Shown here one piece after another: positions 8,336 through 12,920 of a DNA stretch of 64,000 nucleotides (the first letter of the stretch is position 1; every line of letters begins with the position of its first letter). Below the pieces are notes generated by a model. That model was not told the DNA's origin. It saw only the letters and a list, made by a program, of their open reading frames with translations, and did no database searches. The translations under genes were made by a program, and so were the position numbers. The DNA comes from Trichoplax adhaerens. Lineage: Eukaryota; Animalia; Placozoa. The stretch lies in contig NW_002060956.1 in the NCBI RefSeq assembly GCF_000150275.1, forward strand, positions 1,486,280 to 1,550,279, given 5' to 3'.

Positions 8336-9033
8336 TAGTCCACGTATAATGACGATTTTCATTCATTCGATTATTTTGAAAGTGAATTGCTCTACAATAA
8401 AAAACAGCATCTTCCCATAGTCCAAATTTTACAAGAAGAATACTGCTCAATATAATAATAATTAGGCACTTCACCAATGAAGGAAAAATCGCAAATTATG
8501 AAGATACGCGTATTCAAATGTGCCTTCAAAAAGTCAAACTATCGTTTTGAAGCACGAGAGATGTTCTACCGCGTACTGCATCACAATTAGCGGTTTGATA
8601 CCGTATCCTCGATTAGACCAGCATGAATTAATGTTATGTATATCCACATTCCATAGTACTGTAGTTAAATGGAGTGAAAACGCAACCCGAACCCGATCAA
8701 ATAGTTCATTTTCTAACCCCAAAATGAGTGCAATCGCTCTCTATATCGCTACAGAAATTCTTAAGGACACTGGCATACTGTACTGTACAGTACTGTATTT
8801 AGCGGTCCCTAGCTCAATATTGTAGTATTTCCCAACCACGTGATCTGCTATATATAGTCTTGTGATCACAATAATGATCACAAGGCCGTATAGAAACTGG
8901 CCACCTCAATCATTCTGTAGTTGTTAAAAGCATCATAAGCCGTAAAGACTTTGTCCGACTGCCATCGCAACATCATACGACGTGTAAGAGTATATTCTAA
9001 TCCTTCGTCAAGTCTTTCGATCGATCAATCAAT

Positions 9034-10743
9034 ATGAGTGCCAAAGTTCACGTAGAATACTGGTAAGGAATGTCACGATAATACTGTACGACGGTAGTGT
9101 ATTGAATTTCGAATAGATGTCGTTAGAAATTATTCTAGTCTTCCTGTACTGTTGATCCTATCTAGGATTAATGGTGATTTCTTGAGCAGCAATTAGACGT
9201 GACAGTAGTAGCCTTTCATGAGATAGATTTTAATAAGTTATGATAATTAGTTTTAGCTATGATACACTGTTTATGAGGAATTCTTTACTTGTGTAAGTTA
9301 CTACCTCTACAGTATGCAAGTAAGCCCGGACGCTCGTGCAATGAATTCCACGGTTCAATTCTTTAAATGAACAGGGCTTTTCAGAATAGTCACTTTCAAA
9401 ATACAACATCATCATCGTCATTCTAATTCGTCAAGTCTTTACTATCCTGAGGGTCTCTTATCTCTAGTGAGTATCGGTACGCGTTTTATTGATTGCGATC
9501 ACTTTGATTCGCTTGCCTTGTGAATAACAGCCAGATCATAAAAGTGTTACGATAGTACGGTACCGGCTATAAATAGTTAATTTATAAGATATAATAATTA
9601 ATTAGCCGTAGAGAATAACTATTTTCTTCTTATTATTATTGTACTTAGTAATTACTCTTCCTCATCATAACAGTACAGTATATGCACAGTATACAGTATA
9701 TTCGTTCGGTACCATGCCATGCAGTGAGACAATGACGAAGTATTTTTTACGATATCATCGTGATATATTATTATGGCACTGTACTGTTTAATGTGATGAA
9801 ATAAGAGATCCTGAAAATAACTTGCACATTATCCGTATCATTTTATTTATACTGTATATATGAGTACAGTAGAGTGGATGGTTTTATTGCTGATGGAAAT
9901 AACACTGTGCTGCAATACTTTGAAGCGGCAATTTCGTTCGTGATCATTTATACTATAGTGACTAAATATTAAAATTATATACATACGAGTATACATGTGA
10001 TCGCGAATAGTAAAATACAATATTATAGTAATTTAAATTTCATTCCAATACCGAATAAACTCATAGCTATTGTCAACATCTCTCATAGTGGCAGCTGAGG
10101 CTATGTCGGCCGATACAGAGACCTCGCTAGGGATCTAAAGGCCACAATACCTAACCTCCTTGTTGAAGGAGAAACTGGTAGATCTTGTAAGTCTATAACA
10201 CGTGTACACGTATAAACATGCGCTACTTAATTTACTCATATTTCAATATATAACTTGTACATATACTCGTATGTACACTACTTCTTATTATGGTTACTTC
10301 TGACAAATAACAACTCAATCTTTTCGCAGCGAGTTTCGAGGTCACAGTTGACGGAAACGTAATTTTCTCGAAGCTGGAATCGAAAGGATTTCCTGTCCAT
10401 GAAGAGGTGTGTACAGTACATTGATAACATTATACGTGATAGACGCGTGCTTACTGTAGTAAGTAATATCCTCTTCAGGAAATAAATGCAATATTACCTT
10501 CTAGGATTATGTCACTTTATATGGTAAATGTTAATGAATTAGATTATATTTTCCGCAATTGTATCACTATTAATGTACGGTATGTATACAATAATGCCAT
10601 AAACATTGATACACTTTAAAACTTTGTTAACAACACGATTTTTGGGGATTATGCAGATCATCAAAGCGGTTCAAAAATACATAAGTAGCAAAGATGTGAT
10701 GAAAGTAACTGACGTTCAAAAAGAGTCTTGCAATATTTTGTAA
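9034..10743 (+). CDS. MIEN1: Rdx-family selenoprotein, MIEN1 (C17orf37/Rdx12)/SelW2 type, 96 aa, with Sec encoded by TGA at 10096-10098 and a C-terminal CaaX
   Basis: Exons 9034-9062, 10089-10186, 10330-10406 and 10657-10743 (all GT-AG, 291 nt, frame consistent) give MSAKVHVEYCGSUGYVGRYRDLARDLKATIPNLLVEGETGRSSSFEVTVDGNVIFSKLESKGFPVHEEIIKAVQKYISSKDVMKVTDVQKESCNIL*. It has the Rdx signature V.VEYCxxU/C-G, the FEV.V.G..IFSKLE..GFP motif, and a terminal CNIL comparable to MIEN1 CVIL. Confidence 0.93.
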
Positions 10744-10817
10744 ATTGCTACACCAAGGATTCCTTATCTTCGTACCAGTTAATGAACTTTATTACCCTTG
10801 TATGTTACGTATGCATG

Positions 10818-10896
10818 CTATAAATATCCATGATGATATAATTTGAAAGTGGTGTAAGATACCTCAAATTAATATCTGAATTTACTATATTTACAG
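10818..10896 (+). promoter_or_regulatory. SECIS element (type II) in the 3'UTR of the selenoprotein gene
   Basis: Helix I: TAAATAT (10821-27) pairs with ATATTTA (10887-93). Core: ATGAT (10830-34) opposite TGAA (10877-80), giving the tandem G.A/A.G quartet. Helix II: GATATAATTTG pairs with CAAATT-A-ATATC. Unpaired AAA at 10846-48. Apical mini-stem GGTGT-aag-ATACC. The core lies ~90 nt after the stop codon. Confidence 0.88.
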
Positions 10897-11329
10897 TCTG
10901 CAACTACGTTACACTACAGGTATAAAGTTCATCTATACACAAATTAAGTTAGCTCTTCGATTTTTTGCCTTATACATTACTATAGCATCTATTATTTATG
11001 TTAAGCTAAAGATTATTACGTTTTCTAGACTTGGTGAACATTGCCGGTACTGACGTTGCTTCAGTATCACGAAACCATTACAGCTTTGTAAACGTGATAG
11101 TTCTGTTGACACGATAGGAAATATGTAGTGATATTACTGATTACTATTACCAGTTTTAATTTCCGTAGTATTTCTTAAGGAATATTAAAGGCAAATTGCT
11201 ATTAAAATTCAAATCGATGTTATGTAATGATATTTTAAGCTTCAATATCTCGATTTTGTATATAATTATTACCATTGACAAGTATAGTATTTCAACATGA
11301 AAGCTAGGAATAGGAGATCAACTGGCATT

Positions 11330-12920
11330 TACTGTGTACTGTACCGTAGGAGTATACAGTAAGACAAGAGCATTCCGAGGCTGTTGCAGAAACCCTGTAC
11401 CTGAATGATTTATCACATTTACAAGTTGTACTATTCAACAGTACAGAACTTGCTTTATTCAAACACTAATTACGGTAGTATATTAGGCGCCTCTCGCCAG
11501 CAAATGAAATGTATCAAGGTCTGATTGAATTAATTAATTAATTAAGTAATCTTTGCTGCACCAGCAGCAGGATAAGTAGCAGTGTACTGTACAGTGTACA
11601 GTACCATGGACCAGCAAAAGAAAGCCTCAATTGCTGAAAGGTTTTTCTTTAAAAGTCCCTAAGGACAGTAGATACTGTACTGTACTCTGGCACATATGAT
11701 ATTATACACAATATATAGAGTTCAAATACGTTAATGCTCTATTCTGGGCGACTTGCGTCGAGTTTTGAAAAGGATTTGACCAAATACTGTATGTCTAGTT
11801 CTTGATTGGACGTTGGGTTTTCGCTGCCTATGTAAACGTACCATAAATTGTATTATGCCGTCTACGATTGTAGGCTTGCTAATAGCTTATAGCAAGTTAA
11901 AAGCTTGGAACCTGACTATGGAATATTTATGTTTAATGCACTGTCGACTGAGTGCCGAGTGTGCGGATTCGGCTAGTATCGCACCACACCGGACCCAGTT
12001 TACGCTGCTTATGATGTTGGGAGTCCGTGCGTGTGTTTGAATATACTTTACTGTACTAGCATGTACTGTAAAATGGCGATTTTACAAGAATAACGGTACA
12101 CCATAAATGGTGAAAAAACATTTTCAACATGTAATTGACCAAAAAGTTGCAACAGCATGCCCAAGAGAGCTTACTGTTTCCACATACAGTATAAAAAATT
12201 GACTTAATTTCGTCAAAAATGCCCGCATACTGTACAGTACAGTACAGTATAATGTACTGTACTGTACAGTATGTGCTGATTCATCGGATTGGAAAAGGAT
12301 CGCACTGCACAGTGTACAGTATGTTTGTGCGCAGTGCACATTTTACCGTACTGTACTGTACAGTACAGTACAGTACAGTACGCTACAGCTCGATCAAGAG
12401 CGCAACCCAAGAAAAGATTGTGGAAAACAGGCGTTGTACTGTACTGTACACTGTAATGTACAGTACTATACACTCACGTGACGTACTGTACAGTATTGTA
12501 CTGACCACTGTGACACGTGCACACGAACACGACTCTGCCTTACTGAAAGTGAGAGATCAAGTCAGTAACTGTACTGTACTGTACGCTATGGAATAGGGTT
12601 TTGTAGAGAAATGGACAGTAGAAGTACTGTACGCTGCATCGTACTGTACTGTAGAGGTCCAAAAAAGGGGGGAAAAACCATGGCACTGTACAGTACGCTG
12701 TACTGTACTGTACTGTGTACACGTGTACTGTACTGTACCACCGACTACAGTACAGTACCACAAATTTCCAAGGACTGTCTGAAATGTACTGTATAGCACT
12801 GTACAATAAGTTTAGTCCGTGGATACTGCCATCAGCGGGTGAAGCGGTATTCGACTGTCGCTTGCATCGTGGAAGTTTGCTTCAATGTGGTGTACTACTA
12901 CTATACTGTATACTACTGTG
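11330..12920. repeat. Dense cluster of short (ACTGT)n/(ACAGT)n pentamer arrays in both orientations, interspersed with unique segments
   Basis: Examples: gtactgtactgtacagtacagtacagtacagtac (~12349-12381) and tgtactgtactgtactgtgtac (~12699-12720). Densest at 12225-12805. This explains the spurious YCTV/VQYS-rich ORFs in all frames. Confidence 0.85.

Follow-up and report, generated by a model that had tools for sequence, protein, structure and literature searches.

Does a TGA codon that lies in the middle of an otherwise open frame of an animal genome encode selenocysteine (Sec), and does the encoded protein carry a lipid anchor at its other end? This question is raised by a 64,000-nucleotide stretch of the Trichoplax adhaerens genome (contig NW_002060956.1, positions 1,486,280 to 1,550,279; this whole stretch is referred to as the window and is numbered from its first letter). 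A sequence-only reading of positions 9034 to 10896 had proposed an uncalled four-exon gene for a Sec-containing homologue of the Rdx-family proteins SelW2 and MIEN1, ending in a prenylation box. Our results indicate that the region 8920-11222 on the + strand very probably represents a single-copy gene of the SELENOW2/MIEN1 clade, featuring Sec at the UGA codon and a CaaX signal for a probable lipid anchor, the combination of both appearing to be an old state. That the locus is a selenoprotein gene can be regarded as nearly certain, the insertion of Sec itself being predicted from its sequence features.

Gene model, transcript and the in-frame TGA

The sequence and its exon-wise translation yielded four GT-AG exons on the + strand, which together form a frame of 96 codons (9+1+2+1+29+1+25+28) with the TGA at 10096-10098 as its single interruption. 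All details of the previously proposed frame were reproduced, including the lone TGA, the split Cys codon and the CNIL end. The gene is composed as follows.

8920..9033, + strand: 5' untranslated region (UTR), minimum extent; RNA contigs begin at 8920/8921 and continue into exon 1
9034..9062, + strand: coding exon 1, encoding MSAKVHVEY and supplying TG to the split Cys codon; RNA contigs contain the joint 9062/10089
9063..10088, + strand: intron 1, GT..AG, 1026 nt, phase 2, splitting the Cys codon of CxxU
10089..10186, + strand: coding exon 2, T completing Cys, then GGC AGC TGA, followed by 29 sense codons and one final T
10096..10098, + strand: in-frame TGA, predicted Sec codon (codon 13), seen in the sequence and unchanged in mRNA contigs
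10187..10329, + strand: intron 2, GT..AG, 143 nt, phase 1
10330..10406, + strand: coding exon 3, CG completing a Ser codon, then 25 codons; Rdx domain core SFEVTVDGNVIFSKLESKGFP...
10407..10656, + strand: intron 3, GT..AG, 250 nt, phase 0
10657..10743, + strand: coding exon 4, 28-codon C-terminal tail outside the Rdx domain; TAA at 10741-10743
10729..10740, + strand: CaaX box CNIL (TGC AAT ATT TTG), Cys at -4, Ile at a2, Leu at X
10744..11222, + strand: 3' UTR, minimum extent; RNA contigs 10655-11142 (run X20) and 10655-11222 (run X15)

Intron 1 starts with GTAAGG and ends with ...CATAG, dividing the Cys codon (TG|T) of the redox motif V-E-Y-C-G-S-U-G-Y (CGSU), which is read across exons 1 and 2. 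In this reading, the CxxU motif directly follows the first beta-strand, as is characteristic of the Rdx family. The first ATG seen in the transcript is located at 9034, none being seen in 8920..9033, and the ATTAAA at 11184-11189 may serve as poly(A) signal. No + strand open reading frame (ORF) of at least 50 aa covers any of the exons in the program-made ORF list, and the ORF track is therefore blind to this gene.

To evaluate transcription and splicing, four public runs were compared with positions 8700-11400, two of them (X20 and X15, representing two samples of one study) being recorded as RNA sequencing. RNA contigs of both runs carry all three joints (9062/10089, 10186/10330 and 10406/10657), each GT..AG; one contig connects 8920-9062, 10089-10186 and 10330-10406, and another connects 10377-10406 to 10657-10684. 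Exon 2 differs in no letter in these spliced contigs, and the TGA is therefore present in the mRNA. The junctions thus retain the TGA exon, which had been proposed as a check of the sequence-only reading. The transcript starts at 8920 or upstream of it and extends at least to 11142 (X20) and 11222 (X15). In the remaining runs, intron sequence is present and the data are DNA-like; a DNA-like contig of run X3 keeps the TGA, and the same TGA is found in the DNA-like runs under a second organism label at about 0.6% divergence. The lone coding variant, C10107T, is synonymous (GTC to GTT), and thirteen variants are located in the introns.

Blocks of an ACTGT/ACAGT-type pentamer repeat (TACTGTACAGTAC...) are dispersed in both orientations at 8767-8798, 11331-11345, 11576-11604 and 12219-12500. 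RNA as well as DNA contigs break or jump at these blocks, many loose ends being located at 8776-8806. An RNA-contig joint from 8797 to 11331 was considered as part of a host gene carrying the SelW2 gene within its intron; this was rejected, because both ends of the joint fall within the dispersed repeat and many loose ends occur there.

The SECIS element and the selenocysteine machinery

Within the transcribed 3' UTR, folding, pattern scanning, a covariance model and covariation identified a form-2 Sec insertion sequence (SECIS) element with the following parts.

10821..10893, + strand: form-2 SECIS element
10821-27 with 10887-93, + strand: helix I
10830-33, with the 3' GA at 10878-79, + strand: core ATGA
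10835-46 with 10864-76, + strand: helix II, 12 pairs, A10871 bulged
10847-48, + strand: unpaired AA
10851-55 with 10859-63, + strand: mini-stem of 5 bp, form 2

The core ATGA lies 87 nt beyond the last base of the TAA stop, in agreement with the type II element that had been predicted about 90 nt past it. Helix II and the mini-stem were recovered in the minimum-energy fold. Two natural variants observed in RNA contigs, A10836G and A10861G, each convert an A-U pair to G.U; since A10836G would destroy a second, overlapping ATGA, the first ATGA is to be taken as the core.

A custom SECIS pattern (ATGA, at least 11 helix II pairs, AA at 10-14 nt, GA, and at least six helix I pairs) matched once in both strands of the window (128 kb), namely at this position, compared to 0.14 matches expected from first-order Markov simulations of the window, although its thresholds were picked after the element had been seen and the pattern, being specific and insensitive, missed most of the foreign SECIS elements. 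Furthermore, five SECIS elements, all taken from foreign SelW2-like genes, served as the sole input of a covariance model (R1), which was applied to the window without filters. Its top match in the whole window was 10813-10902 on the + strand, with 20.1 bits and an E-value of 0.011 that is to be regarded as rough, followed by a runner-up with 13.2 bits, and the core, the AA and the GA of the Trichoplax element are in register with the model. In a structural alignment of six sequences, 86% of the cells were paired, compared to about 40% with partners slid, and compensatory changes were found in 16 out of 20 SECIS pairs, a value reached by none of 500 shuffles; the alignment behind these pair counts, however, was fitted to the model.

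When applied to L009, another SECIS candidate of Trichoplax with a sub-threshold Rfam match, R1 yielded 11.6 bits, compared to 20.1 bits for the element studied here. R1 is a SelW2-type model and not a general SECIS detector, and there are hints that SelW2 SECIS elements have sequence features in common across distant taxa.

Besides the circumstances of the pattern and of the alignment, two further points count against the selenoprotein reading. The RNA support consists of assembled contigs rather than raw reads, originating from two samples of one study, while other runs considered as possible RNA data turned out to be DNA-like. Moreover, the Rfam model SECIS_1 gave no match in 8500-11500 even at E 10, the Rfam scan of this region returning sub-threshold look-alikes of small nucleolar RNAs (snoRNAs) and microRNAs. 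This blank says little, because SECIS_1 stays below its cut-off everywhere in a genome that is rich in selenoprotein genes (about 28 according to the published count); on the foreign SelW2 SECIS elements, it scored 24-28.5 bits.

One of the look-alikes would assign positions 10824-10883 to a C/D-box snoRNA instead of a SECIS element. ATGATGA and CTGA boxes are present, the region weakly matches the Rfam family snoMe28S-Cm2645, and a kink-turn is used by both RNA classes. The match, however, reaches 19.3 bits at E 1.9 and thus falls far short of the gathering score of 48, and the element resides in a terminal exon rather than in an intron. Its long helix II, the unpaired AA and the mini-stem are typical of SECIS elements, and it represents the best match of the SelW2 SECIS model in the window. 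On these grounds (sub-threshold score, terminal-exon location, SECIS-type fold and top rank under R1), the snoRNA assignment, which we consider the least credible of the alternatives weighed in this study, was rejected.

The sequence-only reading had made its proposal depend on a Sec machinery in the genome. Components of this machinery were found: the tRNA-Sec scored 78.1 bits (gathering score 47) and was reported by ARAGORN as tRNA-SeC with the anticodon TCA, a multi-exon SepSecS gene is present, and a SelD/SPS gene resides on the + strand of contig C1409. Furthermore, SBP2 of Trichoplax has been described previously (PMC2746813).

The SelD/SPS match (C1409:487097-487612, + strand) contains two in-frame TGA codons inside the matched stretch, one of which may be the Sec codon of the selenoprotein SPS2; an SPS2 selenoprotein is listed for Trichoplax in PMC3473315. 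On the very small contig C297 (59-475, - strand), an uninterrupted frame of 180 aa gave a weak SelD match of 47.8 bits, which does not reach the cut-off of the profile; this frame may represent a gene of the AIR-synthase type that belongs to a bacterial associate and not to the animal.

These data also bear on a further alternative, according to which the TGA is a true stop and the locus gives rise to a decaying or non-coding transcript encoding a peptide of at most 12 residues. The lack of a called ORF and of an Rfam SECIS match would agree with it. The frame, however, stays open for 83 codons past the TGA and over three more exons, exon 2 is 50-55% identical to homologues and exon 3 exceeds the Pfam cut-off, as described below. 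In addition, the position of the TGA is kept in many homologues, the lone coding variant (C10107T) is synonymous, and both a SECIS element and the Sec machinery are present. We therefore regard a true stop as very improbable. For the selenoprotein gene, it is proposed that the SECIS element would recruit SBP2 and eEFSec together with the Sec-tRNA, so that the UGA would be read as Sec at codon 13; the product would be a Cys-x-x-Sec oxidoreductase of 96 residues with a thioredoxin fold.

Family placement and identity with a published gene

For classification of the gene, Pfam, PDB and genome searches were carried out exon by exon, the UGA never being read through. Exon 3 alone matched the Pfam family PF10262 (Rdx) with 25.3 bits (cut-off 22.6), and in the genome-wide PF10262 search it was again above the cut-off with 23.7 bits, representing one of three Rdx matches in the genome; membership in the Rdx family, as suggested from the sequence beforehand, is thus upheld. 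No Pfam matches were obtained for the peptides of exons 2 and 4, nor did these peptides match any PDB entry at E up to 10. Among solved structures, exon 3 matched human MIEN1 best (2LJK; E 0.002), with 11 out of 23 residues identical and FSKLE..GFP in common, whereas mouse SelW1 (2NPB) was not found by this search at E up to 10. A closer relationship with MIEN1/SelW2 than with SelW1, which had also been put forward in the sequence-only reading, is supported by this result, although a comparison based on one exon is weak as phylogeny. Exons 2 and 3 showed 50-69% identity to SelW2-like loci detected in metagenomes.

SelW1 is not known to feature the FSKLE..GFP motif, the long C-terminal tail or the CaaX box. 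What it has in common with the Trichoplax gene is the Rdx family, the CxxU motif, a length of about 90 residues and Sec at codon 13. MIEN1 (also C17orf37 or Rdx12) resembles the Trichoplax protein in the VEYC preceding the redox motif and in a tail that ends in C-x-I-L, the tail after GFP comprising 31 residues in MIEN1 and 32 in Trichoplax (counted by eye, MIEN1 from Table 1 of PMC6738349). It differs in possessing CxxC instead of CxxU, and hence neither UGA nor SECIS, as well as in an N-terminal extension; the redox position homologous to the TGA is a Cys in MIEN1 (PMC3527542). The SELENOW2 genes of invertebrates, fishes and amphibians share the Rdx fold, an N-terminal CxxU, the UGA-encoded Sec and a SECIS element in the 3' UTR with the gene studied here (PMC3316567, PMC13134290).

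In published trees, all invertebrate genes were assigned to the branch of SELENOW2, and MIEN1 was derived from a duplication of SELENOW2 at the root of jawed vertebrates (PMC13134290). The Trichoplax gene is therefore a co-orthologue of SELENOW2 and MIEN1. Ray-finned fishes have a Sec-containing MIEN1, the change from Sec to Cys having been assigned to Amniota (PMC13134290; for an earlier view, see PMC3316567).

A comparison with the selenoprotein list of Jiang et al. 2012 (BMC Genomics 13:446; supplement of PMC3473315) was made under the rule that contig C(1415-n) corresponds to scaffold_n, with the following result.

SelW2 gene, C1401, + strand: Ta.SelW2, (+)scaffold_14
SelT-type Rdx match, C1404, - strand: Ta.SelT, (-)scaffold_11
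Third Rdx match, C1402, + strand: Ta.SelH_b, (+)scaffold_13
SelD, C1409, + strand: Ta.SPS, (+)scaffold_6

Number and strand agree in four out of four cases, and no second copy of exon 3 was found in the genome, in which this is the sole SelW-type locus. The gene is therefore the published Ta.SelW2, (+)scaffold_14. The gene itself is thus already known, and our analysis only confirms the published entry in this respect. In the list, family, scaffold and strand are given, to which SECIS coordinates, RNA support and the CaaX box are added here.

The claim that the gene is hidden and missed by annotation holds in part. It is true of the ORF list and probably of ordinary protein sets, since a search with the open frame of exon 3 among 1.84 billion cluster representatives revealed no identical Trichoplax protein, but not of the literature, in which the gene appears as Ta.SelW2 (PMC3473315). 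The same search gave only P0001, a read-through ORF on a Logan contig (70% identical), and P0004, a JGI protein. P0001 is a 79-aa ORF on a contig of 1042 nt, whose first 36 residues match the translation of exon 3 and the flanking intron at 70%, and probably corresponds to this gene in a placozoan that is more distantly related. A search for homologous proteins with P0004 returned nothing beyond P0004, and an ESM Atlas search with P0004 yielded generic Rdx clusters only.

The CaaX box and its age

The protein ends in CNIL, with Cys in the fourth position from the C-terminus, the stop directly after the motif, an aliphatic a2 (Ile) and Leu at X. JGI metagenome contigs were scanned with an alignment of P0004, exon 3 and P0001, which returned 24 loci. 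Nine other distinct SelW2-like genes with a CaaX end were obtained (CHIL, CIIL, CVLM, CILI, CAIL, CIVM and, in three genes, CILL), in all of which Cys occupies position -4 exactly, a2 is aliphatic (I, L or V) and X is L, M or I. They are represented by the following loci.

L012: transcript-like; CGGU; CHIL
L013: transcript-like; CGAU; CIIL
L011, L017: genomic; split-Cys acceptor, then G-G-TGA; CVLM
L018, L019, L020: genomic; split-Cys acceptor, then G-A-TGA (exon 2 outside L018); CILL
L026: genomic; split-Cys acceptor, then G-A-TGA; CILL
L028, L029: genomic; split-Cys acceptor, then G-A-TGA; CILL
L030: genomic; exon 2 outside the locus; CILI
L033: genomic; exon 2 outside the locus; CAIL
L032: transcript-like, the frame breaking between two matches; CGAU; CIVM

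The in-frame TGA of CxxU is present in seven of the nine CaaX genes, the relevant exon falling outside the available sequence in the other two (L030 and L033). Taking all loci together, a TGA at the equivalent motif position was found in L011-L014, L017, L019, L020, L026-L029 and L032. Exon 2 of the genomic loci is 50-55% identical to that of Trichoplax. Furthermore, all three intron positions and phases are common to Trichoplax and the four genomic loci checked (L017, L019, L026 and L028), which also feature the split-codon acceptor AG|T GGN NNN TGA of intron 1. Exon 4 of the foreign homologues comprises 28-29 codons, and the FP motif is separated from the end by 32 residues in Trichoplax and L019, and by 31 in MIEN1 (PMC6738349, Table 1, by eye). 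The protein tails encoded by L011 and L017 are the same, but L011 has no introns 2 and 3, the acceptor of intron 1 being kept; L011 could thus be either a transcript processed in part or a retro-copy, present in a metagenome sample.

With respect to the enzymes, three separate loci for prenyltransferase beta-subunits as well as ICMT were identified in the Trichoplax genome. CVIL of MIEN1 is known to be geranylgeranylated and to be a substrate of geranylgeranyltransferase I (GGTase-I) (PMC6738349, PMC3527542). Based on the motif, its conservation and the enzymes in the genome, CNIL is probably prenylated, which would provide the protein with a lipid anchor.

Several findings have to be set against this interpretation. 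The a1 residue of CNIL is Asn and hence not aliphatic; in the homologue L012, a1 is His. In the PDB search, the similarity of exon 4 to the tail of MIEN1 was not statistically significant, the likeness consisting of length and pattern only. Intron-less SelW2-like relatives (L014-L016, L021, L024, L031 and P0004) possess CxxU but no CaaX box; their G+C content is very high or very low, and they are probably of protist or bacterial origin. Finally, the view that the combination is ancestral in animals is based on introns shared with metagenome loci that are not assigned to a taxon, rather than on named species. The a1 position is the least constrained one of the CaaX box, and Asn at this position weakens the prenylation call without excluding it.

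These findings are also the basis of the most serious alternative, namely a genuine Sec-containing SelW2 whose CNIL is not lipidated. Like SelW1, this oxidoreductase would be soluble in the cytosol, and its C-terminal Cys would have another role, e.g., that of a resolving thiol or a part in binding metal. Asn at a1, an exon 4 without significant similarity to any solved protein and intron-less relatives that end without CaaX, as exemplified by the polybasic tail of P0004, are in line with such a protein. However, all nine readable Trichoplax-like genes keep the Cys at -4, the aliphatic a2, L, M or I at X and a fixed tail length, whereas a resolving Cys would need no placement at -4 within a CaaX pattern. 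In addition, the CVIL of MIEN1 is a proven GGTase-I substrate (PMC6738349). An unlipidated protein thus appears rather unlikely, albeit far less remote than a true stop at the TGA.

For the prenylated protein, the following course is proposed. GGTase-I would geranylgeranylate Cys93 of CNIL, whereupon the last three residues would be cleaved off and the new end methylated by ICMT. The protein would then be anchored at the cytosolic face of a membrane, as is the Cys-containing human MIEN1, and its selenol-thiol pair would act on membrane-proximal targets.

Regarding the age of the combination, Sec together with CaaX appears to be the old state of the clade, from which the amniote MIEN1 would be derived by the change from Sec to Cys. 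The suggestion from the sequence-only reading that Sec and the prenylation box are ancestral and that mammals replaced Sec by Cys is backed by the nine CaaX genes, the shared introns and the published trees (PMC13134290). We lean, with some reserve, towards the clade having been a prenylated, membrane-anchored selenoenzyme since early animals, with Sec and CaaX together since before the split between placozoans and the vertebrate lineage.

A literature search on SELENOW2, SelW2, Rdx12 and MIEN1 revealed no link between the Sec-containing form and prenylation. Likewise, the two SELENOW2 papers cited above mention neither CaaX nor prenylation (PMC3316567, PMC13134290), and neither 'prenyl' nor 'CAAX' occurs in the text of the 2026 vertebrate selenoproteome paper among them (PMC13134290). 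The CaaX signal common to many Sec-containing relatives and human MIEN1 therefore seems to be unreported, and a class of lipid-anchored selenoproteins is not described in the selenoprotein literature searched.

If the proposed reading is true, a lipid-anchored selenoprotein would still be produced by most non-amniote animals, with human MIEN1 as its sulfur-only remnant, and a lipid anchor would be added as a further type to the known routes of selenoproteins to membranes. It is also evident that this gene is overlooked by standard ORF or gene callers. Studies of MIEN1 have dealt with it almost exclusively as a protein of human cancer, and both geranylgeranylation and a weak CxxC centre are needed for its activity. 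Should the older relatives of MIEN1 carry Sec and the same anchor signal, the ancestral job was probably membrane-proximal, selenol-based redox chemistry, which offers a testable lead on the biochemical function of SELENOW2 and MIEN1. With its one gene copy and its small body plan, Trichoplax would offer a simple system for addressing this question.

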